A stretch of 64,000 nt of DNA from Convolutriloba macropyga (lineage: Eukaryota): assembly GCF_964194025.1 (NCBI RefSeq), contig NC_134469.1:79422001-79486000 (forward strand), written 5' to 3'. This document shows, one piece after another, positions 10,736 to 59,462 of this stretch. The position numbers and the translations under genes are program-made. Every line of letters begins with the position of its first letter. The stretch's first letter is position 1. The notes below the pieces were generated by a model. The model saw only the letters and a list, made by a program, of their open reading frames with translations. It was not told where the DNA came from and searched no databases.

Positions 10736-11071
10736 TCACTTCTTCTTCTTCGCCTGCAGATATTTCTTAACATTCTTCATTTCCTCTTGTAGATAAGCTC
10801 GCAGGATTTTGTTCTGTACAGCTCTACAACACAAGACACCTCCATAAGGCCGGGAAATGGTTCGGTGCTTTTTGGCAATTCTCGACTTCTCTCCGGGTCT
10901 GGCTGGCTTGATTCCGTGCAGCTTCTGCTTGGTCGCTGCACACCTGGGCACTCGGCCCATTTTGTTTCGGTGTAGGTAGACGAGTTTGTTACCGGGAGTC
11001 TTCACCAGTCGCCTCTTGTTGGACTTAGTGTTGTAAGTGTTCTGTCGTCGGTAACAGAGTCGTTGCACCAT
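10736..11071 (-). CDS. RPL34: 60S ribosomal protein L34 (eL34), intronless CDS, 111 aa
   Basis: MVQRLCYRRQNTYNTKSNKRRLVKTPGNKLVY...LHGI...ISRPYGGVLC...ILRAYLQEE matches the conserved eL34 sequence. Acceptor tttttcAG lies 11 nt before the ATG. Confidence 0.97.
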   Translation of the reverse strand: MVQRLCYRRQNTYNTKSNKRRLVKTPGNKLVYLHRNKMGRVPRCAATKQKLHGIKPARPGEKSRIAKKHRTISRPYGGVLCCRAVQNKILRAYLQEEMKNVKKYLQAKKKK

Positions 11072-11755
11072 TTTGAATCAATCTGAAAAAGGTGTTAACG
11101 TTATTATTCAACATTTACATCCTTGTTCAGCACGCTTTTTTCAGCGTTTTATTACTCTTGTTGACCCTGAAATCTGATACGTATTATGATTGCTTAGGTC
11201 AAGGTCACCACCATGTGCAAAACAAGACTCCTACTTTCTGAGGGGCAGGATATTTATTAGTGGATTGAATAGAAAAAGTTACTAACTAGTATCAAAAGCA
11301 GTAGTCTAATGTGCTCGAATTTAGATTGTGCGCGGTTTTTTCCATGTCAACTATCTAATAATATTGATAGATAATTTTGACCTAATAGGCAGCAGTATTA
11401 ATGGCATTTTGTCGTTAGTTTTTGTTCACATTTCCAGTAGATAAACGACTGCAAAATCACGAATATTTGAAAATTAATTAATATTCAGTCATGTCAACTA
11501 CGAAAGAACTTGGGAAAATATCAGACTTCAAACGCTAAAGAAAAATGTAGTACAAAGACATTTTCAACTATATTTTAACGACTATTTAGAATAAACTCCG
11601 AACATCATATGCAAGAAATCAGAGTTTCAACTTAAAAGACAGCACCATTCGTAGATGAAATTATACACGTCCAAATTTGAGACAATCACTTCCGTATCCA
11701 CTCCAAAGGTTCCTCAGAACAACTTCTCACAGCCTATTCACTCTTGTACATCTTC

Positions 11756-14700
11756 AAGCCTCTCGAAGGCGGGCATTGAGTGCTTCCCCCAAATGGTCAG
11801 ACTCCGGTCAATTCTCGGTGAAAGCTTTTGAGTAGAGACTACCTTCTTCGTGACCTTTCCCATCTTCCGGCGTTGGAGTTGCATTGCAGTTTGAAGCTGA
11901 CTCAAGTTTCCTCTTTTTGAAAGGATTCATGCCTACAATAGACTTGGGAGGTTCTGGAGTTTTCGGCGGAAATGAAGAAGAGGTGGATTGATTGCCATCT
12001 TCATCACTGTCGGCGTCTTCAGCTTTGGCACCTTTGACAAATTTTTTCGGTACTCCTCGTAACTCGACTAGGTTCTCAACTTTGAGTCCGTCAGCAAGTT
12101 CTTTTACTCTTTCAATTGTAGCTTTTGGATACCTTAAACATAGAGGTCACTTAATGATACCTGATAGACAATAAAAATAATTTTTAATGTCTCAAGGCTG
12201 CTTTTACTCTTTCCCAGTACAAGGACAAAATATAAAACATACGACTAACGTCGGACAAAATGCTCTCGAACCACTGGTGGGGACTCAATTATATTATAGC
12301 CTACTGCAGTCAGGCGGTGGATATGACTTTCAGTTGCAATAAATTCACCAAGGGGTTTCAAATCACGCCATCAGAAGTTATCAAAGACCTCAACATTTCA
12401 AGTGAAAAAATGAAACCAATTTTGGGGTAATTTTCGGTTGACGTTTATTTGTAAACCGCCGTATATTGTGTTCAGCTGTTCAAAACTGTGAATGAAACAG
12501 TATTTTAGATCACGTAAAACTCGGAATGTCAACGATATAATTGTCACCTGAGAATTCAAAAACAGGCAAAAATTTTGAATAAAAGCTTCGAAGATTTAGA
12601 TTACAGATACAAATAACATTTAACCATTGCTTCGCCCAGAAAAAAATAGTTGTTACTGCAAAAGCACCAACTATAGGAGCAAAAATAACGAAAACATAGC
12701 TCGCAGATTGCCAAAAAACAGCCGCAATAGCTTCGTAGATCTGCAAAAGATAGTAAAGAAACAGACCAAAAGAAGTTTCTATTAAATAATGAGATGTTAT
12801 ATTTTAATAATGATTTTGTTTATATTATTGCTGCTTCTAATAGCTGCTCTCGAATACCTTTCAATTAAAGTGACACTAAATCACTTGACCTTATCTCTTT
12901 GCAATAAAGCAAAACAGTCAATTTCAAAGTGAGGAAGTCATTTTTGAGAGCGAGGTAAGCCTCTCGAAGGCGGGCATTGAGTGCTTCCCCCAAATGGTCA
13001 GACTCCGGTCAATTCTCGGTGAAAGCTTTTGAGTAGAGACTACCTTCTTCGTGACCTTTCCCATCTTCCGGCGTTGGAGTTGCATTGCAGTTTGAAGCTG
13101 ACTCAAGTTTCCTCTTTTTGAAAGGATTCATGCCTACAATAGACTTGGGAGGTTCTGGAGTTTTCGGCGGAAATGAAGAAGAGGTGGATTGATTGCCATC
13201 TTCATCACTGTCGGCGTCTTCAGCTTTGGCACCTTTGACAAATTTTTTCGGTACTCCTCGTAACTCGACTAGGTTCTCAACTTTGAGTCCGTCAGCAAGT
13301 TCTTTTACTCTTTCAATTGTAGCTTTTGGATACCTTAAACATAGAGGTCACTTAATGATACCTGATAGACAATAAAAATAATTTTTAATGTCTCAAGGCT
13401 GCTTTTACTCTTTCCCAGTACAAGGACAAAATATAAAACATACGACTAACGTCGGACAAAATGCTCTCGAACCACTGGTGGGGACTCAATTATATTATAG
13501 CCTACTGCAGTCAGGCGGTGGATATGACTTTCAGTTGCAATAAATTCACCAAGGGGTTTCAAATCACGCCATCAGAAGTTATCAAAGACCTCAACATTTC
13601 AAGTGAAAAAATGAAACCAATTTTGGGGTAATTTTCGGTTGACGTTTATTTGTAAACCGCCGTATATTGTGTTCAGCTGTTCAAAACTGTGAATGAAACA
13701 GTATTTTAGATCACGTAAAACTCGGAATGTCAACGATATAATTGTCACCTGAGAATTCAAAAACAGGCAAAAATTTTGAATAAAAGCTTCGAAGATTTAG
13801 ATTACAGATACAAATAACATTTAACCATTGCTTCGCCCAGAAAAAAATAGTTGTTACTGCAAAAGCACCAACTATAGGAGCAAAAATAACGAAAACATAG
13901 CTCGCAGATTGCCAAAAAACAGCCGCAATAGCTTCGTAGATCTGCAAAAGATAGTAAAGAAACAGACCAAAAGAAGTTTCTATTAAATAATGAGATGTTA
14001 TATTTTAATAATGATTTTGTTTATATTATTGCTGCTTCTAATAGCTGCTCTCGAATACCTTTCAATTAAAGTGACACTAAATCACTTGACCTTATCTCTT
14101 TGCAATAAAGCAAAACAGTCAATTTCAAAGTGAGGAAGTCATTTTTGAGAGCGAGGTAAGCCTCTCGAAGGCGGGCATTGAGTGCTTCCCCCAAATGGTC
14201 AGACTCCGGTCAATTCTCGGTGAAAGCTTTTGAGTAGAGACTACCTTCTTCGTGACCTTTCCCATCTTCCGGCGTTGGAGTTGCATTGCAGTTTGAAGCT
14301 GACTCAAGTTTCCTCTTTTTGAAAGGATTCATGCCTACAATAGACTTGGGAGGTTCTGGAGTTTTCGGCGGAAATGAAGAAGAGGTGGATTGATTGCCAT
14401 CTTCATCACTGTCGGCGTCTTCCGCTTTGGCACCTTTGACAAATTTTTTCGGTACTCCTCGTAACTCGACTAGGTTCTCAACTTTGAGTCCGTCAGCAAG
14501 TTCTTTTACTCTTTCAATTGTAGCTTTTGGATACCTTAAACATAGAGGTCACTTAATGATACCTGATAGACAATAAAAATAATTTTGAATATCTCAAGGC
14601 TGCTTTTACTCTTTCCCAGTACAAGGACAAAATATAAAACATACGACTAACGTCGGACAAAATGCTCTCGAACCACTGTGGGGACTCAATTATATTATAG

Positions 14701-15360
14701 CCTACTGCAGTCAGGCGGTGGATATGACTTTCAGTTGCAATAAATTCACCAAGGGGTTTCAAATCACGCCATCAGAAGTTATCAAAGACCTCAATATTTC
14801 AAGTGAAAAAATGAAACCAATTTTGGGGTAATTTTCGGTTGACGTTTATTTGTAAACCGCCGTATATTGTGTTCAGCTGTTCAAAACTGTGAATGAAACA
14901 GTATTTTAGATCACGTAAAACTCGGAATGTCAACGATATAATTGTCACCTGAGAATTCAAAAACAGGCAAAAATTTTGAATAAAAGCTTCGAAGATTTAG
15001 ATTACAGATACAAATAACATTTAACCATTGCCTCGCCCAGAAAAAAATAGTTGTGACTGCAAAAGCACCAACTATAGGAGCAAAAATAACGAAAACATAG
15101 CTCGCAGATTGCCAAAAAACAGCCGCAATAGCTTCGTAGATCTGCAAAAGATAGTAAAGAAACAGACCAAAAGAAGTTTCTATTAAATAATGAGATGTTA
15201 TATTTTAATAATGATTTTGTTTATATTATTGCTGCTTCTAATAGCTGCTCTCGAATACCTTTCAATTAAAGTGACACTAAAACACTTGACCTTATCTCTT
15301 TGCAATAAAGCAAAACAGTCAATTTCAAAGTGAGGAAGTCATTTTTGAGAGCGAGGTAAG
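11756..15360. repeat. Tandem triplication, units of 1201, 1201 and 1200 bp, each carrying XTBD exon 2
   Basis: Units start at 11756, 12957 and 14158 (aagcctctcgaagg) with 3-nt AAG microhomology at the junctions. Units 1 and 2 appear identical. Unit 3 has a few substitutions and a 1-bp deletion. Confidence 0.97.
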
Positions 15361-17871
15361 TCACGCGTGACCAAAAACTTAATCACGCGAATGAACAAAA
15401 AAACTCATCCACGCAATTCAGTTGATATTGCATGAATGATTTGAAGTGATTGTGACGTCATACGGTTGCAACAAAAATCTTGACAAAATAAAAAGCCAAG
15501 AGAAGGCCAATAATAGCCCCAGCTATCGCAGACGTTAAAATTTAAAAGAAGTCACCAAAAAAGATTTGGAATAAAGACAAACACAGCAAAATCAATTGCC
15601 CGACTATCTGCCGCAAACCAACCAACAAAGCAATCAAATAATAATCTACATGAGTAGCTACAAAATGTCGGCCATAAACAATCTTACATATTTACATTTT
15701 CTATGAAAACACAGCTGGCAGATCACAAGAAAATAGCTACAAAAGTTTCATAAAACTGTAGTCTCATAATTCAAATGAAAAAATTTAAGCCTAAAACATT
15801 TTTAAAACATTTTACACTGTTGCATGGTGTGTAATTAATTGAGACTGAGGTTCTGTTGGATGCCCACAAACAAACTTTAAGTAGAGCAATCTCTATTTGA
15901 ATCCTCCGACTAAATTAAGCGAAAATCAATTTGAGAGAGAGAGAAGGAAAATCAATTTGAGAGAGGAAAAGTAAATTTGGGAGTTAAGTTTCTAAAACAT
16001 AGCTGGCAGATTGCCAGAAAATAGCCGCCATAGATTTGTAGATCTGCACTCTCAAAAAAAACATTAAATAAGACAGACCAAGTCTTTTAAAAATCGTATT
16101 TTCATTGAAGGCTGATCTGTTATATTTTGATTAAAAATCTGTATAAGCTATTGCGGCCTCTATTAGCTGATCTCAAATAACCTTCATTTAGAGTGACACA
16201 CCATTTGACCTTATCTCTTTGAATTAAAGTAAATAAAAGTCAATTTCAAAGTGAGGAAGTCATTTTTGAGAGAGGTAAGTCAAGTGTGACCAAAAATTTA
16301 ATCACGCGAATGAACAAAAATAAACTCGCTGCACTAAGAACGAAAAATGACGTCACACATGCAATTCAGTTGAAATTGCATGAACGAATGATCAAAAAGT
16401 AGCTGTGACGTCATATGGTCGTAACAAAAATCTTGACGACGAAATAAAAAAAAACAAGAGAAGGCCAATAATAGCCCCAGCTATCGCTGTGCGGCTATTA
16501 ATAACTAAGGTCTCAATATTCTAAATCTACTCGAATCTATACCGCAGTTATTTTGACAATACACTGATTAATGGCTGCGATGGCTTAGAGGAGCTATTAT
16601 CTGCCTTCTCTTGGTTTCATATTTCGTCGCCAATTATTTGATACCATTGAAGTCACGCTCACTATATTTTAACTTTCTTCAGTCATTCTAGCAATTGTTT
16701 GACAGCATTACATGCGTGCTGTTCTTTTTCAAATTGATTGGAGTGAAGTTTTCGTTGATTCGCGTGAATAATTTTGGCACTCATGATTTACTTAAAAGTC
16801 AAATTGAGTTTTCCTGAGTGTAAAAAATTATTCACGCAAATTAACGATAACCTCACTCCAATCAATGGGAAAATGGGATTATGTAATGCTGTCAAACAAT
16901 TGCAAGAATGACTGATGAAAGCTGATTTGTAGTGAGCGCGACGTCAATGTTAACAAAAAAGTTGACGAAATATAAAAACCAAGAGAAAGCCGATAATAGC
17001 TCCGCTAAGCCATCGCAGCCATTAATCGTGTACTGTCAAAATAGCTACGAAATAGATTCCATAGATTTAGAGTATTCATCAACTTGCTGAGCAGAAAATG
17101 TCAAAATTGTGCTCTCAAGTCAATACATTGGTCAGTGTAGCAGTATTCGGATACATGCCGTGGACGTTTATCACTGAGTAGTCCGCTACAAAGACTTGCA
17201 ACTGTACGGCCAATCCATTACTAGATTTCACGGAATCTACTGAGTTTAAGCTCTGAGGGCTTATGAGGGGACTGAAATTAATTTGGACAAAAATAAACGA
17301 GAGAAATTCTGAGCAAGATGTTTTTCCTATAATAGACAGTTTGCTTTTATTAAGGCACTTTCCAGCGGCACTTACCCGTGAGAGCCATGTAATAACTATC
17401 TTTAATGCCAAGAAGTAAATCTTCTCCGACCGTTTCGATCAAACTTAGAGACTAGTAAAGCTCTGAACGAATTTGGTTGAGAGCCATTAATTAAAGACGC
17501 TTTATTGTTTATCCGTCTAGTATGACCTACTGTACTGCTTTTATAACCCGATCCTTTCAATAATCTAACCATCTCAATAAATAACCTGATGTTCTTAAGA
17601 TTTTCGCATTAGATTTAATCAACTACAGGTGAAAATCTGATTAAGAGACTCCGCAGTTTGATATATACCTGCATCCTAGCACTAAATTGTTCATCCATAC
17701 AGACGAGAGTGAATCCAGTTCGAATGGTGGCATGTCTTCTCTGCCCCAGTGTCTCTCCAGGAACTGTCTCCTCGACTGCCACTCCCTTTCCCCCTCCCAG
17801 ATCTTCCTCAGCTCATCTATAGTCTCGACTGGACGCCTCTCGGGCGCCACAAAGCCATGTTTGCTCATCAT
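11808..17871 (-). CDS. XRN2-binding-domain (XTBD) protein, CDKN2AIPNL/CDKN2AIP/PAXT-1-like, about 175 aa, 2 coding exons, exon 2 present in 3 tandem copies
   Basis: Exon 1 is 17871-17669 (IDELRKIWEGEREWQSRRQFLERH...LSSVWMNNLVLGC, donor AG|gtatat). Exon 2 follows tgtttaag| at 14534-14210, 13333-13009 or 12132-11808. The phase-2 join gives GCRYPKATIERVKELADGLKV, which completes the XTBD motif, followed by a disordered tail with KKRK. Confidence 0.88.
15994..16501 (-). mobile_element. Helentron/HINE-like non-autonomous element, family A (other copies 15091-15530, 49295-51543 interrupted, truncated copies in the 1.2-kb repeat)
   Basis: On the plus strand: aaaacatag, hairpin ctggca-gat-tgccag, aatagccgc ... 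gcggctatt-aa (asymmetric sub-terminal inverted repeat). Repeated at several loci. Confidence 0.6.
16515..17076. repeat. About 560-bp imperfect palindrome (fold-back/MITE-like) in the XTBD intron
   Basis: Arms e.g. gattaatggctgcgatggcttag / ctaagccatcgcagccattaatc and gcaattgtttgacagcattacat / atgtaatgctgtcaaacaattgc. Centre near 16795. Confidence 0.9.
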
Positions 17872-19664
17872 TTTCGAAACTGGAACTAAAGTTCAACATT
17901 CTTAACATTTCCATTTTACTTTTTACCGTTTACATTTTTAACATGACATTTTCAAAGAAAAAAATTTACATTCTACCCTTGTTTAAAAATTCAGTTAGTT
18001 AATTACTTCAGCAGATTTTTACAATTTTAACTAAGAAACCTCGACGACGTTTCAGACTGGCAAGGGAACTAATTTGCTTCATTTAATAAGGCGTGTCGAA
18101 AACTACGCTAACATTTGAACTAACATTTTATAATTTTAAAGAGCCAAAAGCAACCAGTTCAGCCGAAAAATTTTATGAATGTGAAAAACACCCAAAAGTA
18201 TGAATTAGACAAATCCTCAATAGCACGATTTGAGTCTGACTCTAAGAAGGCAACAAGCTAAAAACGGGAAAAAAACATACAGGACTCAAATAACCACTCA
18301 TCCAGTTTTGAAACTAAAAGAAAAAAATTTAGGAACCTCCCTTCACGTCATAAGTCTCCAAAACAGTCTCTGTGAATCTTATACTTGGAGACTGGTGAGC
18401 TGGAAGGCTCTACGAGAACTTAATGCCCACTGTTCGCTGCCTGTTTATCCCGTTTTTGAGGACGAAAAGTCAAATGGGTCAGACGAAAAATCGGTCAAGC
18501 GAAAAATCGCATTAAAAAAAGACAAACAGGACAAATATAATCACTACAAATTTCTTTTGAGAGCAATTAAACAGGGCTAAAAATCATTCATGTAGCTGTT
18601 TCGTACAGTGTTTAAAATTGTAGAGCGCAATTCTATATATTTCAAATTATTTTTCAATTATCATGCGAAAGTTTAATGTTCGCCTGATCTCATTCGAAAG
18701 CTCAAAACACCACAAATTGAACATATGCAGAAAAAGAAACCCATGCCCGCCAATTGATCAAAATCATTTAAAAACTTAAACAACTATAGATTCAGATCTA
18801 TTCAGCATTCTAAAACATGCATTTTAAAAAATATTACATTGTTAAAAAAGTTTTAAGGACAGTTATTGTTAAATTTTGTCACTTCGAGATTGGGTGTTAT
18901 TCTTGCATGAACATCATTACCACATCTACAAATTTCTGAAAAATGGTTAAAATATAGGTACAATTGCTTTTGTTGTCCTATGCAAATCCAAGAGTCTCAA
19001 GGGCCAATAACATTTGAATTATGCAGCTCTACATCCAAATTGTCACATCCTAAATCAGGCACTGCAAAAACGTTCAGAAGTGATGTATGCATGCAGAAGT
19101 GAATCGCAATGGAACACTTGCAGAAAAAGACAAAAAGTAGATAAATAATATTATTTAAGGACATGACAAAAAAACAAGGTGCCAAAAAAACACCAACGCG
19201 TAATATTCATATTCAAATTTATGGTCAGTTTATCACAGAGCAAAACAATTGATGGTACAAAAGTCTGAAAATTCAAAGACTACAGAACCGAAAACTACTA
19301 TCCTTAGTTTACAGGATAATACAATTATAATACGTTTTCTCCTTATTTCCACAACCAGAATATATGCAAGAAGATTTTGATAGAAAAACTGGACTTTGGT
19401 TGAACTCTTAATAGCTGGTGATAAAAGCTTAATGTATGCTTCTTGCTTTCGAAAATTTTCAGTTGATAGTTGAAATATCTGAGGCATATTTAAGGTAAAT
19501 TCACCTGTATTTGAAAAGCTGGTCTGAAAAAATTTTTCATAAACAAACAAAAGTTTTCTTCGTCGCAAAATTTATCGACTAAAAGCTAATTGGCTATAAG
19601 CCAGGCTTGCTTGAAGTTTTTAACCCCAATCATGGAGGGAATCATCAGATTACATTTCATCTGC

Positions 19665-36833: not shown

Positions 36834-37738
36834 TATATCTAAAAATTCGCACATTTTTCTGTAGATTTTTCAAATAAAAATGCACTTGAATTTGACAAAT
36901 TATAGAATTTCTACTCTGCTCAATTCACAACATTCAGCTCAAAAAATGTCGAACCAAGTTGTTCTCAGATCAATTGACGGGCTAGTTCAGTGGCAGAGCG
37001 ACGAGTTAAAAAATCAGGAAAAGGCTCTGCAAAATGATTCTTTTTCTTTTCACTCCCATTCATCTACTTGACCCCTATATCTTTTCACCCCAAAATCCTT
37101 CTCCAAACCCCGCGAATCACTAAGTTTGACTATATTAATTCTCCCACTTTACCATTAATTGTAACAACTATATAATGAATCAAATCCGGGTGAAATAATT
37201 GGGGTTAAGCGATAAAAGGTGAAAATGACAAGGCTAAGAAAAGAGATACCCTGATAAATGCACAACAATGTGCTTCAAACTGCGAAAATAGCCCGGATAA
37301 TATCTGGACTTCAGTTAAGCGCAATTTCTATGCACACCAAATTATAACAGCTATGATTGCCAACTTATCATTACTTTGATTAGGTGCCAAGGTTACTCTG
37401 AATTTCTTTTACACAATTTACAACCAGCAGCTTATATACAAAAATCAGTTTTGGGAGCTCTAAATTAAATGCTGACTATTGTCTCGTACACGATACCTTG
37501 GCTGCAAAACATTCAGCAAGCCAACAAATAGGACAACTTCTGTATCAGGACTACACACGTAGCACGCCTCCCATTTGAATTCCTGATCCTACCATACACA
37601 CTGCAATTTCACCAAATCAATCAGATTAAACTCATTAAGTAGCCCTAATACAAGGATTTATTCGATTCGACAAGTTAATTATCGTTTTGCGATCTTAAAA
37701 CCAGGAAATCTATCGTACAGCAATGTCGTTATACCGTT

Positions 37739-42436: not shown

Positions 42437-42489
<53 letters not shown>

Positions 42490-44510
42490 GCTGCAGAAAG
42501 GTCAAAATCAGCAGAAAGTCGCTCTTCGCTTGATCAAATACAGAAGTGAGTGGAAAAAATATCGTCGCGGCATAAAAAAAACTTTTACCGATAAATTCAT
42601 ATGGCTTGTTCAAATTCACTCCACACACACTTTTAATTAGTTACCTTAGTTCCATATCAGTTTTTTTGACCTCAAACTAACTCAAGATAAACAAGTGCAA
42701 AGTCATTTTCTTGTGACGTAGGATCTGAGCTAGTCACGTATGATCAAAACCTATCCAAGTAAAAGACTTAAAAGATTGTCGAAAATTAAGTGACAAATGA
42801 CGTCAGCCGCGCCAAATCCGTTAGTTAGATGAGGTGATTCCGGAAATTGTTCACCTTTATTGTGTCAACAAATGTAAAACGAAAAGAGCATCAGAACATT
42901 ATACAAAAAATCAGGAACACCGCAGTAAGGCTACACTCCGTTTACAGCTTTGCAGTTAGAAAATCAAAACTAATCTCTAGACGTAGCCGGTGACAACCTA
43001 GATCAAATGCTGAAATGAAAATGTATAGGGAAATTTTGAAGCCAACATTTTGCGCGACAGATTTTTCCAAAACAAAAATAGCTGAAAGCTTGAATGACGA
43101 AACTACTCCTTTCTCACGCCAATGTCAAATGGCGCACAGCGCCTCACAAATCCAGCGCTTCTACAAAACCCAGACCCCATTTTGTTCATAATAATAATTA
43201 TGGTCATGAACACGGCCTTACATTCAATAACTGACGTCTAAGAACTTGATAAAAACGCTCAGTTTAATTGGTTTTATCCGCTAAAAAATTGTCCCAAAAT
43301 GTTAACTAAAGACAAAAGCTAAATTACCCATAAAGTCTAGTAGAAGATATAGAATTTCAAATAAATTTAAATAAACCCATTTTTTTTTCTATTTGACTCC
43401 GAATTAAAATTTCCTCGCAATCTATAAAAAAATTATCCCATGTATTTGCTCATTTTGACAAACCAATTCAATCACATTTGACACGAAACTGAGAGAAAAG
43501 TGCGTCATAAAAAAGCACTTATAAATGTAAGCTCACATAAGATCCATTTCAATGTAAGTAACAGTTAGTAAAATTTGAAGTTCTTTCGCAGAAAATTTTG
43601 AACATAAGCAAAAACGTCGGACTAATTACTCTCAAATAACAGGCGAGCGGTTAGCTTCGTCAGTAGTTAGTTGGGGCTTCGGGAGGCTCCTGGGTTTACC
43701 TATTTTGTCAAATGGTCAGACAAGTCCTTTGTACGAAAAATCACATTACAAAGACAAACAAGAGTAAATTAATCGCTATAGATTTCATTTTGTATCAATT
43801 AATAATGCTAAATCTCGAATTACAAGCAAGTAATCAAAAAGGCTGTACATATTAACAGGTGTTTAGAAATCTTAAAAATATGAAAAAATCTCACCTATTT
43901 CGAGAACTCTGCTCAAATTTTGAATAGGTTTTTCGACATCCTTTGTGTTCAAATTGGACTGACATAGAGCAATATTCGAAATCAGCTGCGCCTTCGTCTC
44001 AATCAACGAACCATCTTTCTCGTCTGATAAAGCAAGAAAAATGAGAGATCGGTGATAATTATGGTGTGCCCAAAAGAATTCACTCTTTTTGAACAATTCG
44101 GTCGCCAATGATTTCAACTTGTAGCATACATCCAATCTTTCCTCCCGTCCCCACTTGTAAACCTCATCTTTCTCTTCAAAATCGAGCAGCACCAGGTCAA
44201 AAGCAATAACATTGCCGTCAATTTGGATTTTGTATTTTGATTTTTCATTCAAAGTCATAGTCTGCAAGGCTCGGCTTATTACGTAACTCGGAAACGAGGT
44301 ATGGAACCCAATTCTAATCGGTGACTTGGGAAATACAATTGGGGTCATATTTTCTCCAATATCCGCTACTGTACATGTGAACACGCATTCGGAATTGTCT
44401 ACCGGAGTGACGTAAGGACTTAACCCGGGAGTGACCACTTGTTTCTGGAATAAATCGTCATGTGCTCGGATAAAGCCTTGAAATTTATCACTGTCAGAAT
44501 TTTCAACCAT
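37739..44510 (-). CDS. FKBP-like/TPR co-chaperone (FKBPL/FKBP6-type: degenerate PPIase domain plus TPRs), about 277 aa, 2 exons
   Basis: Exon 1 is 44510-43895 (RALQTMTLNEKS...FDLVLLDFE...W...LKSLATELFK...YHRSL...SNIALCQ, donor G|gtgaga). Exon 2 is 37956-37739 (acceptor ctttag). The join reads VLEIEPNNVKALFRRGK...DLEKAFALDPAN, a canonical immunophilin TPR. Confidence 0.85.
38883..39108 (-). mobile_element. Helentron/HINE-like short element, family B (related pieces near 10270-10540, 12235, 18350-18570, 40680-40890, 43600-43800, 46750-46915, 48040-48720, 48960-49185, 51650-51745)
   Basis: aacataac, hairpin ccgac-taac-gtcgg, ttgctctcaaa ... ttcgagagcaa-ttaa. Shared core gacgaaaagtcaa..gggtcagacgaaaaatcg. 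Confidence 0.6.
39540..40525. repeat. A-rich degenerate satellite with about 175-bp period, in the FKBP-like intron
   Basis: Recurring gtga.attaaaa..ttg.a.aa..ttccat and aac.tattatcaaaccct (e.g. 39935, 40150, 40323, 40499). Confidence 0.6.
42442..42486. repeat. (TA)n microsatellite
   Basis: About 22 TA units. Confidence 0.97.
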
Positions 44511-45612
44511 ATCCCTCTTAAAATAGCAAAACAGCCATGCGTAACACGGTCTAAAAGTTTAATAAATGCGGAAATCCACAAATGCAGCTCACAGGATAGA
44601 GAAAAAAATTAAATTAGAGATTAATTTTGTCTTCATACGTAAGGGAACGTTGAGAAAAATATATACGTTTATATAAGAATGGCTCGCTCAAATGCCAAAT
44701 TAATTTGAGACTATTAAATCAAAGGAAGAAATTGGCAAAATTCATTTTGGAGTATTTGCTTTGAGCGAGGTGATTTTAGGCCGCTACATTTATTGGAAGA
44801 AATGTAAAATCAAAAAGAGAACAGTGAATTGTACCTCATTGTCTCAAAACAATTAAGATAATTATCAAGACAAATTGAATGTTCGAAAATGGATAACTGA
44901 GACAACAATAGTACAGCATATAGTCAATCCGACTAAATTCAACGTCCACACACACACATGAAAGGAACGAGAGTAAAAGTTTCAAAGTTACCATAAAAGT
45001 CAACTTTCTTATTTGGACATTACAGGATCATAAAAGGTTTTCAGAAGCTGAAATTCCTCTTCTTAACTAATTATCAGTCAAATTAAAAAGTTTTACATTA
45101 CCATTGCATGGTTAGCAAGTTTGGGAGTTTTATGATTAGTAACTTTCTCTTACGGAGATTATCTCAGTTAAGTTTCAAGTAAAAATTCTCAAGTTGAATA
45201 TCGAATCTTTTCACTCTCAATAGACCTCTGACGGACGAGCCAAAATATAACATATTGACATGATATATATACTTTTGTAACAAATTTTAGTAATACAAGT
45301 TCATATGCGCGCACAAACAACATCCAGAAGACAACTTAAATTGATTCGCATCTGAGCTAATTAACCAAAAGAATTACTTGACAATGACTAATAACATGAA
45401 ATAAATTCTAAATATCGTTCAACATCGGGCTTCTAGTTTATTTTGCAAGTTTTATGCCCATCTCCTCGAAGTGAGTTTTATTTGGAACAATAGTAAATGA
45501 AATTTAAATTTGAATTCTAGTTTGTTTCTTCGCCAGTTAGAAGGCAAGTCCAGCTGGCTTGGAAATAATATAAATCTCTATTAGTTCCTCTTCCATCGTC
45601 CTCTAATTCCAT

Positions 45613-48600
45613 TCACACTTGCAGCACACTCATCCCTGCCTCCAAGTGCTGGACATTGGGGGAGGGGTGGCTCTGTTGTCCTTCATAGTTAAAGCCGTCC
45701 TCACTGCGGAAGCCAGAGTCACTGTGGTCGTTGGCATCGGGGGGTTTGGCCTCTTCCTCCTCTCCGTAAGGGGTGGAGAAGGAGTGAGGTGCGGTGACGA
45801 GGGCTTCACTGCCTGGGGAGCTGCCGTGGCCAGAGGAGGAGGAGAGCTGCGAGTTCTCTGCTATGTTCTCACTCGATTTAGCTGCTGGTAGATGGGGCGT
45901 AGCTGATATAACTAAATACATCACAGAGAGACACAAAATCAGTCAGTTTTCAGACATTTTCAAACTGATTGTCTACAGTAAAACTCGCAGCATTTTTAAC
46001 TTATTTTACAAAGATAAGAGTGGAACCCTGTTCACCCATCTTGAAGAATTGATTTCAATTCTATTTTTTTACTGAACATTGAGTATGATCTAATCCGGGT
46101 ACGGGGTAAAAACCGACCAAAACATGATACAGTTCGGTGAATACGAGGGTGCTCACGGATTAATTTGACACGTAAAGGGGTTACGCCAACAACGAGAATC
46201 TAAGCCGACGCATAGCAATTGGAAGGGTATTTCGACCAATCAGATTTGCAGGTCGATCAGCAATAAGCTGTCCGACAAAATTCATGAAATATCGAATTCA
46301 CGTTGGTGCTTATACACAAGAACAGAGTTGAAAAACTCAACCCAAAATAATTTTTTAGTTACATTTTTTGTCCGATTTCGGTTTATTTTTAAGATTATGG
46401 TGATTTTATACTTGATACTTTACCGGTTTTGCTTTCAATCGTGAAATTGAATTGCAATCCAATGGTTAATTACACTAATTTACAGCATCCAACTGTTGCA
46501 TTTGTGATATATCTAATTAACAGCGTGTATCAAATTTAGCGTACAAAACAACAAATGCAACAAAACGTTAATCGCCCAAGCAATATTTCTCTACAAATAA
46601 TTGCACTCGAAAATTGTTGGCTAGAAAAGAATATTCTGGTACTTTGGAAAAGTTTTTAAAAAAAGTTGAACACAACACAATAATAACAACAATAGCAATT
46701 AAAAACGATGGTTTTTGCACTAATGCAGCAATTCGGACAAAATTCTGAGCTCTTAACTCTAAGAGAGCTGCTCGGTCACCTAATGCCCTCCGAACTCTAC
46801 ATGTTTATCCCGTTTTTAAAGACGAAAAATCAAATGGGTCAGACAAGAAATTGGTCAATCGAAAAATTGCAAAAAAAAGACTACATAATTGCTACAATTT
46901 TGTTTGAGGGCAAGTAAAAAATACACCACGCCCGATAGTCAGCAGTAAAAGCAATACAACATAATAATGTCACAATATTGATTCATTTGAACTGAATGCC
47001 AGAAGAAAATAGTAACGGCAATAATAAACAAAGACCAGTAAAGAATCTGTCTCTGTGCTGGTCTTTATATTTTAAAAAAAAACTTTACTGAAGTTGACGA
47101 CGAACAACTCGACAAGGAATAAATAACAATTCAGTATGCATTTTGAATTGCAGCTTAAAGCAATAATTAGTTTGCAATGGACTTCAAGTATTAAATATTC
47201 TAAAACAAAAATTAAAACAATTGTGAATTCAGAAGACGAATTCACGATAATGCTGATACATGAGAACATAGATTTGGAAAAATCATCTCACAATAATTTT
47301 TTCGTTAGATATTTTGTCCGATTCCGTTTGATTTTTAAGTTTAAAGTGATTTAAAACCTGAATCTTTATCGGTTTTTTTTTCAACCGTGAAATTGCATTG
47401 CAATCCAAAGGTAAATTGCAATAATTTACAGCATCCAACTGTTGCGTTCGTGATATATCTAATTAACCCCAAGTATCAACTTTAGCGTACAAAATTGAAT
47501 ATAAATGCAACAAAAAACCGTTAATCGCCACAGCAATATTTTTTACAACGAACAATTGCACTCAAAAACTTTCAACTAGAAAACAATATTCTGGTACTGT
47601 AGAGAATTTTGTTTAAAAGTTGAACATTACACAATGATAACAGAGATCGGTCGGTAATCTGCGTTAGAGAGCAATTAAAAAGTTAGCAGGAAAATTCCGG
47701 TTTATTTTAAACTAACACTGATATATGCATTAGTCAATTTGGACAAGATGGACGATGGTTTTTGCACTAACGCAGCAATTCGGACAAAATACTGAGCTCC
47801 CAGCTCTATTTTTCTAACATGAAGTCGCATCTCGCTAGCAGCGGTTATTTAAAACTCAGTTCAAAAGTAATGCCCCGCGAAGTGTTGAATAATAGCAGAA
47901 ATTTCAGACCTGCGATATCCGAAACTTGCAAAAACAAGACTGTTCAGGTTGACGCCGAATACAGAAACACCAGCCACCTTTATTGATAACAAGTTTTCTT
48001 AAGGACAAAAGAACGACTAAAATCAATTCCAAACATAAATTAAACCATACTACCGGACAAATTGCTCTCGAACGACAGCCGAAGTTTGGTTTTAACTGTA
48101 GCAACCTTCAGCATATAGAGGTTAGCTTTAGAGGGCAAAAAAGCGCGGGAGGAAGTCCAAAATTGTATTTCAAATTTTGAAACTACGCGTCTTCAAAAGT
48201 TCCTCCACAGCTTCGGTGATCCATACACTTAGACCTCAAGCAAGCTCTTAAAGAACAGCTCAGAGACTCAATTCCCTCAAATTATCTGGTTCTTTCAACG
48301 TGAAGTCAAACCAAATTTTTCGTTAAAAACGCTCAAGTTTACAATAATTGCTTCAAATTTCTCCCAGGAGCAAATAAACGACCAACTAACGTCGGGCGAA
48401 ATGCTCTCAAGTGAGGAAAAAAGCGCGGGAGGAAGTCCAAAATTGTCTTTCAAATTTTGAAACTATGCATCTTCAAAAAATCCTCCACAGCTTCGGTGAT
48501 CCATACACTTAGACCTCAAGCAAGCTCTTAAAGAACAGCTCAGAGACTCAATTCCCTCAAAGTATTCTGGTTCTTTCAACGTGAAGTCAAACCAAATTTT

Positions 48601-51600
48601 TCGTTAAAAACGCTCACGTTTACAATAATTGCTTCAAATTTCTCCCAGGAGCAAATAAACGACCAACTAACGTCGGGCGAAATGCTCTCAAGTGACTGGC
48701 GATCAGTCGCCTTCGTTTGTACTTAGCTGGTGCTTATGTATGAATCAGTGAGTGTGAGCGAAGGGGAGGGCGGCGATGATGGTGGAGGGGAGGGGGGGGG
48801 GGGGGGGGGTGGGTCAAGTAATGAGGGACAGGGTTGACGGAGAGCTGGACAAGAGGGGGTCAAAATACCTGGGTTGGAGTAGGGTGGACGGTGGTTTCGG
48901 GGTGGGTAACAGAGGGCGTCAAACTTTGAAGACTGAGAACCACCACTTACACCTTAATATTGTCTCCTCAAAACAGTTTTGATGAAAAGCATACTTAGAG
49001 ACTAGTAAAGAGTGATGCTCTAAGAGAGCTGCTCGGCCACCTAATGCACTCCGAGCGCTCCATGTTATCCTGTTTTTGAAGACGAAAAGTCAAATATGTC
49101 AGACAATAAATCCGTCGAGCGAAAAATTGCATAAAGATTACCACAGGATTATACGATCGCTACAATTTTGTTTGAAGCCAATTATAAAGATACACCACGA
49201 CCAAAAGTCAGCAGTAAAAGCAATACAACATAATAATGTCTTATTATTGATTCATTTGGACTAAATGCAACAAGAAAATATTGACGGCAATATTAAATAT
49301 AGCTGGCAGATTGCCAGAAAATAGCCGCAATAGCTTTGTAGAACTGCAGTCTAAAAAAAAACAGTAAAAAAATGACAGACCAAAAAATGGTTTCTTCATT
49401 GAAGGCTGAGATGGTATATTTTGACCAGGAATCTGTATAAGTTATTGCTTCCTCTATTAGCTTCTCTCAAACAACCTTCATTTAGAGTGACACACATTCA
49501 CCTGACCTTATCTTTTTTAAAAAAAAACCATCAATTTCAAAGTGACGAAGTCATTTTTGAGAGCGAGGTAAGCCACGTGTGAAAAACGATTTAATCACGC
49601 GACTGAACAAAAAACTCACCCCAATAAGAGAGAAAAATGACGTCACGCACGCACTTCAAATGAAATTGCATGAACGAATGAACAAAAAGCAGATTTGAAG
49701 TGGCTGTGACCACATATGGTCGTAACAAGAATCTTTCCGACGAAATAAAAAACATAGCCGGAAGAACTCCGGAAGCGACTCGAAACGTCAGAAAAAACTT
49801 TAACTGTAGCCATTACCTTTTGTATTAAACCATTAACTCATTACCTCCCCACGACAGTGAAATTTAAATCACTGTCACTAAGAAAAACATAATGCAGCAA
49901 AATTTTATATTGAAACCAATTGGTAAGGTTAAAAAAGTCTGGAAAAATTAATATGGTCAAAAAGCTGACAGGGCTATCAATTGCCCTCAAATAATTCATG
50001 ATTCTAATCTCAAAAGTATTGCAAAATCAAACGGCAGATAATAATCATAGAAACTAAGTTAAAATTTTTCAAAAAAGAATGCTCAAATTTATGAATCAGA
50101 AAACCACTACAATTAAATTTCTAATAAATGCAATTAAGACAAAAACAACACGTACTTCTTCCTTACTCTGTATTCTAGACAAGATTTCATACGAATTCAA
50201 AAATTGAATTAATAATAGAAAAGAAATTCAAATGCAAAAAATCGTTTAAAAACAATACCAAGGCCGGAAGAAAATTGCAATAAATGGTAATAAGAGGAAA
50301 ATTTCGAAAAGGCTTCCTAGCAAACTTTCAGTACTGCCTTATGTTGAATGAAATCAATTGCAAACAAAAGAAATCACGACAATCTAAGAAAAAGCTGAAA
50401 TCAATCATTTTTTTGACAATAATCTTCGAGTCGTAACAACTCAAAAAATCAATATAACGAATATAAATGTAGGTGCCAGGACGAAGCTCGAATGGTATAA
50501 TCTAGAATGTGAAAAGCATGGACACAAAGTATCCTTACTTAAAAAGACCGTAAAAAGACATTCTTGATTTTTGAAAAATATATATCAAAATAAAAATTAA
50601 GAAAAACGAATTTAATTCATTGTTCAGCATTCGGGAAACAGAAAAGACAGTGAATCATCGGAGACAAGGATCCATACTCCTGAACAGAATAAAAAAGAAA
50701 CTGCAGAATTCAAAAATACTAAACATTTTGCAAAAATGATCAAAAAATTTAAGGGCCTGCATTTACAAGGATTTAACTGTTTTTCAAAAGTTATTGCCAA
50801 AAAAGCTTGATTTTTTGCTAAGAAGAAATTAAAATCACTCAAGTTGCACAAAAGGACTACTTCTAATAATTAAAACCAAAATACAAACTGAGAAATATTG
50901 GAAAAAACTACCAAAACCGGAGTAGCATAAGTACAATTTTATAAAACAAAATTACATCGAGGAAGAAAGAAGCGTTGAGTATATGAATTATCAAAGGGAA
51001 GTTGCCATATCAAGTGATTTTTGACAAAAAGACGGCTGAACGATCCAAAAATGAAAAAATTATCAGAAAAAAGCCGAAAATTAATTTTAAAAAAAAAAGA
51101 AAAATATGTGCCAATTTTGATCTTCAAACGCATTTTCCAGCTCTTAAAAACACTGTGGTATCACTTTCCGAGGGTAAGATTTCAATACAGCACCAAATAA
51201 AAATTAATTCTATAAAAAACCAAACTACAGGCAAAAAAACTGGGCCACTTAGACAAAAAAACGGCTAAAAACGGTTATTTATATGTTCCATTCAGTCAAA
51301 ACTACTTTTCAAGTCAAAAAGTCATTCACTAAACGCAGCGCATGATCAAAAAACTTATCTCGCTCAGAAACAATTAGTTCACGCTACAATTTTACTCACT
51401 TTCACTTTTAGGTCAAGACATTGTCTGAAGGAAAAGTACTTCCGGTAAAAAAAAACCTTAAGGAAACCAATACTCCTCTTCGAGTCGTAAAAAAACCAAG
51501 AGAAGGCCACTAATAGCCCCAGCTGTCGCTGTGCGGCTATTAAACAAAGACCAGTAAATAATTTCTCTCTGAGTTGGTCTTTATATTTTTAAAAAATTGT

Positions 51601-54600
51601 TTCAATGAAGTCGACAAAAATCAAGAAGCCAATCGTTAAAAAGTTACATAAACGTTGTCAGACGAAAAACCGATAGAATCAAAAATCACATTCAAAAGAC
51701 CGGCAGAACTAAAAATAATTGTTAAACTTTGTTTGAGAGCAATTAGACACGAGTCCAGTAAACCTTAACGAGTGTTTGAGCAGTGATTTAATGAAAAAGA
51801 TTTCTCGTGAGCAGCTTAATATTGAAGCTCTATTGATTAAATAAGATGTTTCCAATATTACTCCGCGATAAGTTCAGCTGCTAAATTTTGTGAATGAGCG
51901 CAATTCAGCTCATAAAAATTCAATGCATCATTGTCAAGAAAAAAGGCGTCAAATTGCATGGACAAAAAATGGATTAAATACGATCCAAATAATTGCTAAA
52001 AAGAATTCTTTTCAGGCCAGTCAGCTACCATAAATTGACTTTGAATCCAAAATAGGAAACAAATACTTGACTGGTTAGTCGAAATAACACTTACTTGCTG
52101 GATCAGCCATGGTAGTGGTGGGAGATGGTTCAAGTGAACTATTGGCACTTCGGGTAATGGACTTTCCAAATATCGCGACGTTTCGCTCCGTCATCACAAA
52201 CGAATTTTTATTGTCCGACTCATTATTAGCACCAACAGATCTCGGCAGCAAATTGAGCCTAGGCCGATTCGCTCTCTCTTCTGAAACGGCGTCAACAACC
52301 ATCAGTTAAAAATCAATTTAATAAGCCGCGCAAAAATCGTAAAATGATGATGCATAACATCGACCCACTCTTGGATAACATTTTTTTTAATGATTGAGTA
52401 AGTTGTCAACGTTTGGTTCACAAAATTCACGCAGGTTAGATAACCACTCTTACTTCTCAAACTCCTTCAAGTATAACAACGTGCAGCCTAATGCAGGCGA
52501 GTACTAACCCTCAGATAATGGTTGAAGAGGAGGGTCATTGTTGCGGCTGCTGGTTGAGGTGACTCTACTTCTCTGTGGGTTGGGGTGGTACTGGTGAGGT
52601 GGGTATTGATGATATGAGTTGTTGTGGTTCCAGCCGCCCCTTCCACCTTGGTTGCTCCCCCAGTTTCCTCCTCCCGTATTATTGTATCCTCCTCTTGGGG
52701 CACCGTAATTTCCTCCTCCTCCTCTTTGCATCCCTCTGGAGCTACCTAAAATTGATAGGAACGTTTGTATTTCCTGAAATTTCGCCTTTTTTGCAGACAA
52801 AGGACAGCCTGACTGATCTTATAGAACTAAAGACATGATTATAAAGCCAAAGCCGGCTGGTACACAATTTTACAATTAAGACAGTATAACTTCATTGTTA
52901 GGTTGTTACAGATAACTGCATTGTAGTTTAAAAGCAGGAAAAGTCATTGTAACAGCACGATGTATTTATCAAGTAAACAATTGATAACGAAAAGAACAGA
53001 ACATGTCCAGCACGTTGCCGGAAAATAGCTGCATCCGACATTTTGCATTTGCTCAGAAATCATTAACACAGAACCAAAGCGGGTACCAGGGGAGTACTTA
53101 ATGTTATCCAACTAAAAATTGCGAATGAATAACATGAGGCCAAAACTGAAATTTTTAGAGGCGTTTCGAAATTAATGTTCTCTTCATCTCTGCATTTGTT
53201 CGGCAATTGTACAACAATTTTTGTTTCAGTTGAGTTCCATGGGATATTTCTTGCGAAAACTAACAACCAAGAGAACCGCAATAACATCTACACTCAAATA
53301 TAGCAGCTATTAATAATTTAAAAGATTGCACTACCTGTACCTCTAGCTCGCATGGGATACCCACGCGGAAATCGACCTAATCAAACACCGAACTTCAACA
53401 TGCTAGGGATTTTATCATACTCTCATTACTAAATTATTAAATAGTTGCTCTCTTCCTTTTTTTTTCACATAACAGTTCAAATGTTCTACGTTTCCCTGCG
53501 TAATAGCTAAATTCACTAATATCAGAAAACTTGAATTGAGGTTCATTTATAGCTGAAACGGCAAAAGTTTTACGTTATTGTTCCAGCTCAGTTGTACGAT
53601 ACATTAATACACGCACCCGCAAGTTGTAAAACTCCGAAAGTTTGGTAGAATTTAAAATACTAGAAATACTTAGCTAGTGACTTCTGTAAACTTTCGGCAT
53701 TTTCAAACTTGCGATTTGCGTGTCCTAACAAAGTTTACGCGACTCTTTAGAAGTCACTTCAAAACTCTGGCTTAACATGTTAAATCTCTACGCGAATCTC
53801 CACAAACGCCAGAAGTTCTCAGTGACTTCAAGCAGAGTCACGTAACCTAAATAAATTATTCCAGGATTTTTCAAACATATTCTTTCCAAATTCATAGAAA
53901 TTTCCACCAAACAGTCAGAAAGTAATCTCGAAATTGGCTGCTGTGATAATTTTATCTGTAGCATTTGCAAGAAAATTCAAGTAATATGGCTAAACTCCCT
54001 TCATCACTACTAACTCGGTCGATTTTGATGCTGATGACTTGGTCTCTGTGGCTGGAAGTTTTGGTAATTGTGATAGTCGTCATATCCTTGGTGGACTCCA
54101 GTGGAATTGCTACGGTGATTATTAGTATAATATGATCCTCGGGGGTGATTAAAACCACCTCTCTGAGGGGCACCCCTTTGGAAATTTCCACCAGCTCCAC
54201 GTGGTGCGCCTCCACCACGGTTATAACCACCTCGTTGAAAATTATTATTATTATTATTGGGATATTGTTGATTGTTTCCACCTCCGCCTCTTCTTCCGCC
54301 TCGGCTACCACCCCGGTTGCCATCAGCCAAGTTGACTCGCAACTTATTTTCGTCCAGCAGCTGTTAAAAAAAATAACTTTAAACATGGTCGATTTGACTA
54401 AATTAAATTAAGAACGGATGTTTAAATACCGCGTCATTTAGATCCAAAGCTTTTTCCAGAGACTCGTCGCTCAAAATGTCAACATAGGCAAATCCTACAA
54501 AACGACAAAGATGATATTCTAAATAGCTATGTTGATTAACTCACCTAAATGGGGTGACTTACCTTTAAATTCATCTGTCTCTTTAGTTTTAATGAGACGG

Positions 54601-54798
54601 ACTCTATCATACTAAAAAATAAATGTTTTTAATTAATTATGCATAAACACATATGAGGCAGAGTCTGACAAAACGTACTTCAATTCCCTGCAGAATCATT
54701 TCCAGATCACACTCCAGTGCGTATTTGGGCAGATTTCCAATAAAAATTGTGTACGGTGGCCCACCGTTAGGCACGTTCTGAGCATTTTCTGGTCGCAT
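45613..54798 (-). CDS. EIF4H: Eukaryotic translation initiation factor 4H (eIF4B/4H family), about 433 aa, 7 exons
   Basis: Exons 54798-54679 (PPYTIFIGNLP, RNP2), 54611-54563 (RVRLIKTKETDEFK), 54494-54430 (GFAYVDI, RNP1), 54360-54015 (LRVNLADG then RGG), 52745-52509, 52280-52095 (SEEERANRPRLNLLPRS...AIFG, eIF4H C-terminal motif) and 45911-45613. All GT-AG, total 1302 nt in frame. The last exon is the least certain. Confidence 0.9.
46315..47800. repeat. Diverged direct repeat (about 46315-46760 vs 47260-47800)
   Basis: ttttgtccgatt, gtgaaattg.attgcaatccaa, aatttacagcatccaactgttgc, aatattctggtact and acgatggtttttgcactaa.gcagcaattcggacaaaa occur in both. Confidence 0.8.
48137..48695. repeat. 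Near-perfect 280-bp tandem duplication in the last eIF4H intron
   Basis: aaaaaagcgcgggaggaagtcc...aatgctctcaagtga starting at 48137 and 48417. Confidence 0.92.
49751..51490 (-). mobile_element. Helentron-like 1.74-kb element (family C) nested inside a family A copy
   Basis: aacatag, hairpin ccgga-agaac-tccgg, cgactcgaa (49776) ... ttcgagtcg (51479). It splits family A at its A-run (gacgaaataaaaa | aaaaccaagagaaggcc). Confidence 0.6.
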
Positions 54799-55258
54799 TC
54801 TCTCTTAAACAACATTAACACTTAAATGCACAAAGAACAATTATTGCGTCGTGCATATCCTACTGGGTAGTTTAGGTAGACCCAAATCCTTGGGTTGACA
54901 GTATTTTCAGAATAAAGATTACATCTCAAATAAAGTGCCTTTACTCAGTTGAGTTCCTTTCAATGTAAATCCACAAGAAATCTATAGGTTAATTTTTTCA
55001 TATGGACAAGGTTCTCTGTTTCAGAACCATATTAGCCCGGGCGTTCGATAAAGAAAGTTTGGGACTGCCATTAGATCTATGGACGACATAGTATTAAGCT
55101 TCAATTCTCATAACAGGACTGGCAACTTAAATAGATTGCCTTTTCCCTTCGTCAAATCATTCAATTTCAGATCTTTTTAGCTACGAACAAGAATCCCTTT
55201 CAAATTCAACGAGTTCTAAGTCCCGTCGTTCCTAGCTTCGACGGGTGAGATTGATGCT

Positions 55259-59400: not shown

Positions 59401-59444
59401 TGTCATAAAGGGTGAAAACCCATGGTATATCCCTAAAGACTTCG

Positions 59445-59462
59445 CTACTACTACTAATACTT

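Follow-up and report, generated by a model that had tools for sequence, protein, structure and literature searches.

Candidate spliced-leader acceptors at the start codons of six co-oriented genes in the acoel Convolutriloba macropyga

In acoels, spliced-leader (SL) trans-splicing was mentioned as unpublished in 2008 (PMC2481426) and is now described for Symsagittifera roscoffensis, in which 30.2% of genes are trans-spliced to a 32-nt leader (PMC9911081; Martinez et al. 2022, G3). The present study concerns a 64,000-nt stretch of chromosome 2 of Convolutriloba macropyga, an acoel of the same family, the Convolutidae (NCBI RefSeq assembly GCF_964194025.1, contig NC_134469.1, positions 79,422,001 to 79,486,000), which is referred to below as the window. 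The window (37% G+C, no N) carries six host genes, namely an eIF4H-like gene followed by FKBP-like, PARL-like, membrane-protein, XTBD-domain and RPL34 genes, and each of these is preceded by an AG situated 5–11 nt upstream of the start codon. An earlier inspection of this DNA, here termed the original prediction, had proposed both that these AGs are sites of SL trans-splicing and that the six genes constitute a single polycistronic unit.

The trans-splice sites of S. roscoffensis have been mapped, and operons or intercistronic distances are never mentioned in the paper concerned (PMC9911081), the word "operon" being absent from the S. roscoffensis papers. The parallels between S. roscoffensis and the genes described here are the family, a shared leader (31 of 32 nt) on orthologue transcripts and acceptors just upstream of the ATG. 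The literature on C. macropyga holds nothing beyond a genome note without annotation, in which the genome is reported as 1.18 Gb (Wellcome Open Research genome note). No paper reporting or testing operons in acoels or other xenacoelomorphs was encountered in our literature search, and the statement in the original prediction that operons are undescribed in this lineage thus holds for the literature searched.

Outside the acoels, two arrangements invite comparison. The SL operons of C. elegans, Ciona, Oikopleura and chaetognaths resemble the present locus in consisting of co-oriented housekeeping genes, in placing an acceptor at the ATG and in belonging to lineages with a leader. Their median intercistronic distances are, however, short (99–105 nt in C. 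elegans, 1 nt in Ciona and 31–33 nt in Oikopleura; PMC7986045), and chaetognath operons are defined at less than 250 bp (PMC12460157), whereas four of the five spacers of the present locus measure 0.7–12.6 kb, one of them harbours a retrotransposon and the linkage is only partly conserved. In T. muris the median reaches 517 nt (PMC7986045); the spacers of about 900 nt found here are well above that value and long even for hybrid operons, and the operons of T. muris are recognisable by leaders of a specialised SL2 type, a specialisation which is not known in acoels. The second arrangement is that of monocistronic SL genes (C. elegans SL1, tunicates), which share with the present genes an acceptor a few nt before the ATG and kilobase-scale spacing to the upstream gene, the median in Ciona and Oikopleura being approximately 2.2 kb (PMC7986045). 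The spacings in the window are mostly 0.4–3 kb and differ in that one is only 373 nt, while the gene's own promoter, seen in those systems, is proposed here.

Acceptor sites upstream of the six start codons

All six AG sites, and their distances of 5–11 nt to the ATG, were located where the original prediction had placed them when the minus strand was read. In the coordinates that follow, the A of the AG is at the stated position and the G is one base lower.

54804..54811, minus strand: eIF4H candidate SL acceptor tgtttaAG, A at 54805, AG 5 nt before the ATG (54798)
44517..44524, minus strand: FKBP-like candidate SL acceptor attttaAG, A at 44518, AG 6 nt before the ATG
36839..36846, minus strand: PARL candidate SL acceptor atttttAG, A at 36840, AG 5 nt before the ATG
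35494..35502, minus strand: membrane-protein candidate SL acceptor ttattttAG, A at 35495, AG 8 nt before the ATG
17880..17890, minus strand: XTBD candidate SL acceptor tttagttccAG, A at 17881, AG 8 nt before the ATG
11083..11090, minus strand: RPL34 candidate SL acceptor tttttcAG, A at 11084, AG 11 nt before the ATG

The sites precede the following genes (aa, amino acid residues).

45613..54798, minus strand: eIF4H-like gene, 433 aa, seven exons, in-frame splice model
54798-54679, 54611-54563, 54494-54430, 54360-54015, 52745-52509, 52280-52095 and 45911-45613, minus strand: exons of the eIF4H-like gene
37739..44510, minus strand: FKBP-like/TPR gene, 277 aa, two exons (44510-43895 and 37956-37739), intron of 5938 nt
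35868..36833, minus strand: PARL-like rhomboid gene, 321 aa, single exon, Pfam Rhomboid 8.8e-15
30522..35485, minus strand: single-pass membrane protein gene, 220 aa, two-exon model (35485-35147 and 30845-30522)
14210..17871, minus strand: XTBD-domain gene, 175 aa, exon 1 at 17871-17669 and last exon at 14534-14210, Pfam XTBD 3.4e-13
10736..11071, minus strand: RPL34 (eL34) gene, 111 aa, single exon, Pfam Ribosomal_L34e 3.8e-34

The likelihood that such sites arise by coincidence was estimated using a fixed definition, i.e. an AG 3–12 nt before an ATG with at least five pyrimidines and at least four T among the preceding 8 nt. In the window, 13% of 986 minus-strand ATGs and 7% of 878 plus-strand ATGs possess an AG of this kind, and since all six genes do so against this background of 7–13% per ATG, a value of p ~5e-6 is obtained. 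Acceptors are therefore present and their occurrence is non-random. We regard it as very likely that the six AGs are overall leader acceptors, and more so still for that of the FKBP-like gene, for which transcripts of orthologues are available (see below).

Upstream ATGs lie less than 50 nt before several of the AGs, while none lies between any AG and its ATG; an exonic 5' untranslated region (UTR) thus fits these sequences less well than an outron or an intron would. The eIF4H gene has an out-of-frame upstream ATG 10 nt upstream of its acceptor, and splicing there would remove it; PARL has an in-frame upstream ATG at 36854, upstream of its acceptor; and XTBD has three within 45 nt upstream of its acceptor. 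The resemblance of the sites to the cis acceptors of the same genes, as claimed in the original prediction, extends to four of the six, which are YAG-like, but not to those of eIF4H and FKBP-like, which read AAG whereas seven of the nine modelled cis acceptors read YAG. AAG also serves as a cis acceptor in the XTBD intron and also occurs before the RPL34 and alcohol dehydrogenase ATGs in a relative.

The gene models of the original prediction were sustained by the splice models, by an orthologue transcript in the case of FKBP-like and by a related assembly, species B, in the case of the membrane protein, and its observation that the six genes are co-oriented was repeated by re-reading the sequence; the window yielded no further host gene, and none at all on the plus strand, and scans of the whole window with Rfam and for tRNAs yielded no matches. 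In the eIF4H-like gene the introns are all GT..YAG, the junctions are all in frame and the last intron measures 6183 nt. Because its Pfam match is confined to a weak RRM_1 hit in exon 1 (0.22), the name of this gene rests on motifs recognised by eye (RNP2/RNP1, an RGG-rich region and EERANRPRLNL). Its last exon and splice phase are common to species B and a second assembly, species C, species B (L007/L008) having exon 6 and the last exon in unchanged order and species C (L005) having the last exon. As a side observation, this extra C-terminal exon (45613-45911; L005:6719-7195; L007:8908-9222) is 44–46% identical in species B and C, has no Pfam match and contains a motif, KPPDANDHSDSGFRSEDG, that is identical in species C (L005) and that we take to resemble a DSGxxS phosphodegron.

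The FKBP-like protein matches TPR_1 (1.7e-5) and, weakly, FKBP_N_2 (0.013) in Pfam. Two PARL orthologues share 62% (P0014) and 40% (P0015) identity with the PARL-like protein. Both exons of the membrane-protein gene are present in species B, where the second starts at the same QDSLDN and lacks an ATG, from which it follows that this segment is an exon and not a further gene; a candidate seventh gene starting at 30827 (MAEIDNE...) was rejected, as the homologous exon of species B has no ATG and homology begins at the acceptor. The XTBD domain lies in exon 1 and continues into exon 2. The last exon of this gene is present in two identical spare copies (13333-13009 and 12132-11808), and the first copy is where a gene call of 175 aa in L001 terminates. 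The exact RPL34 protein is on record in GCA_964194025.3 (OZ077300.1, 79.43 Mb).

The leader on acoel transcripts and acceptors in related species

Direct evidence for leader addition at a homologous position comes from the FKBP-like gene. Protein searches with an FKBP-like exon recovered seven contigs from marine metatranscriptomes that encode an orthologue of 276 aa. The three longest, JGI contigs L009, L012 and L014, read GCCTAATTGTTGTGATAAACTTATTAAATAG followed by TCATTG and the ATG, i.e. the full 31-nt leader 6 nt before the start codon, GCCTAATTGTTGTGATAAACTTATTAAATAG being the published S. roscoffensis leader minus its last A (the first 31 nt of the 32-mer). Four shorter Logan contigs (L006, L010, L011 and L013) have the 3' portion of the leader at this junction. 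The distance of 6 nt is the AG spacing observed both in the window and in species B, and the protein encoded by L009 is 61% identical to the FKBP-like protein over 269 aa, which validates the exon junction. Hence, in the orthologue mRNAs of this one gene, the leader is joined at the position homologous to the candidate acceptor. A possible second cistron in the 3' end of these transcripts was rejected, as it comprises 29 codons, has no homologue and both differences between variants are non-synonymous.

The typical position of the leader was derived from JGI contigs scanned for its last 21 nt, which yielded 113 contigs; in 98 of these the leader lies at a contig end. In the 77 of these 98 whose first ATG opens an open reading frame (ORF) of at least 80 aa, the median distance from leader to ATG is 8 nt and 47 (61%) have a distance of 12 nt or less. 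All six sites of the window (5–11 nt) fall within the mode of these leader-bearing acoel mRNAs, i.e. six of six are placed just 5' of the ATG at a distance typical of the lineage. The 113 leader-bearing contigs include no orthologue of the six genes and no dicistronic contig; a search of the JGI contigs for the leader joined to RPL34 gave no hits; a representative library searched with the last exon of the membrane-protein gene contained two weak matches but no transcript that could be used; and, of the proteins looked up by exact match, RPL34 and the membrane protein were on record in genome assemblies only and PARL was not on record.

SL RNA genes exist in the lineage, in S. roscoffensis (PMC9911081) and in the environmental contigs L044, L058 and L072, where the leader is followed by GTAAGT, a U-rich stretch and then a stem-loop. 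As these genes read ...AAATAG followed by GT, the leader ends in ...AAATAG and the published 32-mer has a final A that lies outside the leader exon. At the other end of the leader, the heptamer GCTTTTA directly precedes the published 31 nt in several transcripts and one SL RNA gene (L009, L012, L014, L017, L024, L035, L059 and L072), so that in some acoels the full leader may reach about 38 nt. Among environmental contigs, the leader was also observed as a DNA copy fused to ORF starts of the TTTCAG..ATG type (L031, L040, L041, L050, L065, L074, L089, L092, L094, L098, L104 and L125). The two LINE 5' ends in the window contain no leader copy, and the published chaetognath leaders have no match in the window.

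Comparison with related genomes was based on ENA assemblies, species B and species C being judged to be acoels from protein similarity and shared gene order. An AG 5–11 nt before the ATG is kept in orthologues of four genes, in three species each for PARL and RPL34 and in two each for the membrane protein and FKBP-like, as follows.

RPL34: AG to ATG 11 nt in the window, 8 nt (L002, ctttCAG) and 8 nt (L128, tttttaAG) in relatives
PARL: AG to ATG 5 nt in the window, 8 nt (L005, gtttCAG) and 6 nt (L004, ctgaaaAG) in relatives
Membrane protein: AG to ATG 8 nt in the window, 8 nt (ttctAG) in species B
FKBP-like: AG to ATG 6 nt in the window, 6 nt (gattttCAG, attgaa, ATG) in species B

This conservation is meaningful because non-coding DNA is otherwise unalignable between these species; the DNA similarity of RPL34 to L002, for instance, runs for 17 nt upstream of the ATG and then ends. 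The acceptors remain with their genes when the neighbours change, and since those of PARL and RPL34 persist through rearrangements it can be concluded that an acceptor is tied to the gene rather than to a place in the cluster. In summary, trans-splicing at the six AGs, as put forward in the original prediction, gains support from the statistics, the leader on FKBP-like orthologues, the typical spacing and the retention of the AGs.

Two neighbouring genes in these relatives were also noted. A co-oriented single-exon zinc alcohol dehydrogenase gene lies 2.2–2.4 kb downstream of RPL34 (L002:6376-10211 and L128:10001-13632) and is itself preceded by an AG, at 9 nt from the ATG; neither this gene nor the pair it forms with RPL34 is present in the window. 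In species B, a co-oriented STT3 gene lies 2.7 kb downstream of PARL (L004:10001-14196), with TTTTCAG about 20 nt before its likely ATG.

Independent promoters or shared transcripts

We propose that the acoel 31-nt leader would be added to each pre-mRNA at the AG 5–11 nt upstream of the start codon, such that the resulting 5' UTR would consist of the leader and a few bases and upstream ATGs would be removed. Each gene would be transcribed mainly from its own promoter, via an outron no longer than the spacer, and not from one promoter upstream of eIF4H, while one or two adjacent pairs might still share a transcript. A same-strand cluster of leader-accepting genes with mainly independent promoters is, in our view, the probable nature of this locus.

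The spacers, measured from stop to acceptor, are 1095, 899, 373, 12641 (2660 without the BEL element described below) and 724–3126 nt in gene order. The stop-to-ATG gaps of the original prediction, about 1.1, 0.9, 0.38, 2.7 (BEL removed) and 0.74 kb, were reproduced, with the caveat that the 0.74 kb between XTBD and RPL34 is counted from the third copy of the last XTBD exon and becomes 3.1 kb from the first. A poly(A) site at roughly 0–500 nt from the next acceptor, as expected of short intercistronic regions, is within range for the PARL and membrane-protein pair only; the XTBD and RPL34 pair would fit solely if the AATAAA at -69 or -174 were the XTBD signal. The AATAAA motifs that the original prediction placed about 65 and 170 nt before the RPL34 acceptor are indeed present, at 69 and 174 nt. 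Downstream of the eIF4H stop, AATAAA occurs at 134 and 174 nt; for FKBP-like, its distance from the stop is 80 nt in the window and approximately 75 nt in an orthologue transcript. These signals leave 0.8–0.9 kb before the next acceptor, which is room for a promoter and an outron. Hexamers constitute weak evidence here, given that RPL34 and PARL have no canonical hexamer nearby.

The features that bear on the spacers are given below.

35495..35867, minus strand: shortest spacer, between the stop of PARL and the acceptor of the membrane-protein gene, 373 nt with the 3' UTR included, no AATAAA or ATTAAA
19660..29640 (approximate), plus strand: BEL/Pao long terminal repeat (LTR) retrotransposon of about 10 kb, in the spacer between membrane protein and XTBD, antisense to the genes
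11750..15250 (approximate), no strand assigned: tandem repeat with a unit of 1200–1201 bp and about 2.9 copies (about 3.5 kb), near-100% self-identity at an offset of 1200–1201 nt

The BEL/Pao element has an intact ORF of 2309 aa (Peptidase_A17, RVT_1, DUF1759 and DUF5641). Its LTRs share a 300-nt core that is 100% identical (19665-19964 and 29248-29547), are near-identical over about 390 nt and lie 9583 nt apart from start to start, which indicates that the insertion is recent. The element is also found, with identical encoded proteins, in a second assembly (L003). The tandem repeat, situated in the interval between XTBD and RPL34, holds the XTBD terminal exon three times with identical ORFs (14534-14210, 13333-13009 and 12132-11808); it was missed by Tandem Repeats Finder because its period exceeds 500. 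Two degraded LINE-like elements (55259-63000, plus strand) adjoin eIF4H on its upstream side in the opposite orientation; in the first, an SGNH/GDSL esterase-like ORF precedes an endonuclease domain.

A number of observations weigh against our proposal. In length, the spacers fall far below the 4–6 kb introns of the same genes, which are filled with repeats. On the gene strand, T exceeds A and G exceeds C in all six spacers as in the introns, the reverse being true of the left flank, where there are no genes. None of the spacers yielded a promoter motif or a conserved upstream block. In species B, eIF4H (exon 6 and last exon), FKBP-like and the membrane protein (both exons) retain their order and orientation, and in species C, 2.8 kb that contain no FKBP-like gene separate the last exon of eIF4H from PARL downstream of it. 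Moreover, no copy of the S. roscoffensis leader was present in the window or in the genomic loci searched for it. Finally, we infer the use of these six AGs in C. macropyga from orthologues and statistics, and where transcription starts is an inference as well.

With regard to the spacers, a k-mer search for a shared motif upstream of ten acceptors revealed nothing, a word AATGTTG near four acceptors being judged to be chance, and nothing conserved emerged from cross-species DNA comparison upstream of the membrane-protein gene (species B), RPL34 and PARL. The only spacer DNA conserved between C. macropyga and species B consists of two collinear blocks, TTAGTCATTGTC.AGTAA and ATGAACTTGTA, situated 215–315 nt after the eIF4H stop (window ~45300-45400; L007 ~9390-9530), which are probably elements of the eIF4H 3' UTR.

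The spacer skew, the linkage in species B and C and the shortness of the spacers relative to the introns would also fit co-transcription, and the first alternative to be considered is accordingly that at least one adjacent pair is co-transcribed and resolved by the leader without the whole cluster being one unit. The best candidates are PARL and the membrane protein, whose 373-nt spacer has neither AATAAA nor ATTAAA and a strong G>C skew (+0.35 on the minus strand), and the block of eIF4H, FKBP-like and membrane protein, which is conserved in order and orientation in species B, where the proteins of the latter two genes are 33–57% identical to those of the window. A spacer of 373 nt is plausible as intercistronic in view of T. 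muris, with its median of 517 nt, larger intergenic distances and "hybrid" operons with internal promoters (PMC7986045). Against such pairs, the spacer between eIF4H and FKBP-like is at least 0.77 kb in both species (0.77 kb in species B), and species B has 4.6 kb between FKBP-like and the membrane protein. Furthermore, PARL has left the block in species B, where it lies on a different large contig from FKBP-like with STT3 downstream, yet it retains its acceptor, and none of the 98 leader-bearing transcripts is dicistronic, mature mRNAs being a weak test. The skew pattern could equally result from 3' UTRs, outrons and antisense repeats, and short spacers too are expected where 3' UTRs and outrons adjoin. 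On balance we consider this alternative doubtful.

A second alternative supposes ordinary cis-splicing at the AGs, each of which would end an intron of the 5' UTR behind a short non-coding first exon, with no leader being added. Introns in the 5' UTR are common in ribosomal-protein genes of many animals, and four of the six sites resemble the YAG acceptors that these genes use in cis; in addition, some of the six may not be trans-spliced, only about 30% of S. roscoffensis genes being so (PMC9911081). This explanation is nevertheless improbable given that the FKBP-like orthologue mRNA bears the leader at exactly this position, that the leader-to-ATG distances of acoel mRNAs match the six sites and that no cross-species comparison disclosed a conserved upstream exon.

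The full six-gene operon of the original prediction, a single SL-resolved unit driven from upstream of eIF4H, draws on the co-orientation of all six genes (an operon demands at least two consecutive genes on one strand, and six of six are on the minus strand here) with an acceptor at each ATG, on their housekeeping functions, on spacers shorter than introns with intron-like skew and on the AATAAA motifs before the RPL34 acceptor. It would, however, require a primary transcript of about 44 kb through the antisense 10-kb BEL element and the 3.5-kb tandem repeat, and its spacers (0.37–12.6 kb) would be 2–100 times longer than those of any described animal operon. AATAAA follows the stops of eIF4H and FKBP-like at 80–174 nt, and both PARL and RPL34 lie among other genes in relatives, where the linkages FKBP-like to PARL, PARL to membrane protein and XTBD to RPL34 are not conserved; no XTBD gene lies upstream of RPL34 within 6.3 kb and 10 kb, respectively, in the assemblies of two relatives. 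A run of six same-strand genes is moreover an event of about 3%, which is not remarkable given that 731 windows of this genome were read. Taken together, these observations make a single unit very improbable. Scarcely credible, lastly, is the view that AT-rich DNA supplied an AG before each ATG and that the run of orientation is coincidental, for although T-rich AGs are common in DNA of 63% A+T, the six-of-six outcome is far beyond the background and the AG position is kept in orthologues even though neutral DNA is saturated.

Implications for gene annotation and for operons in acoels

Based on the findings of this study, the secure part of our interpretation is a new instance of the known leader trans-splicing of acoels, while the operon part is offered as a hypothesis to be put to the test. 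Since acoel SL trans-splicing has already been published, additional leader-accepting genes in a second convolutid are useful for annotation and not surprising. Gene boundaries in the unannotated C. macropyga genome should be set at these AGs, and the median leader-to-ATG distance of 8 nt provides a rule that may be reused in acoels.

The locus further raises the question of whether acoels have operons, as do the other leader-bearing animal phyla of the papers cited above. This question is directly testable using this cluster, its partly conserved counterpart in species B and public directional poly(A) RNA-seq data (PRJEB75559). That part of the cluster is truly polycistronic, be it the block of eIF4H, FKBP-like, (PARL) and membrane protein or PARL and the membrane protein alone, is a possibility that we entertain only tentatively. 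If true, such a partial polycistronic unit would represent the first operon of the Xenacoelomorpha, which would be new for the lineage and not unexpected, and its intercistronic spacers of 0.4–1 kb would be several times the lengths found in nematodes, tunicates and chaetognaths, scaled to a repeat-rich 1.2-Gb genome, thereby extending the known range of intercistronic distances.

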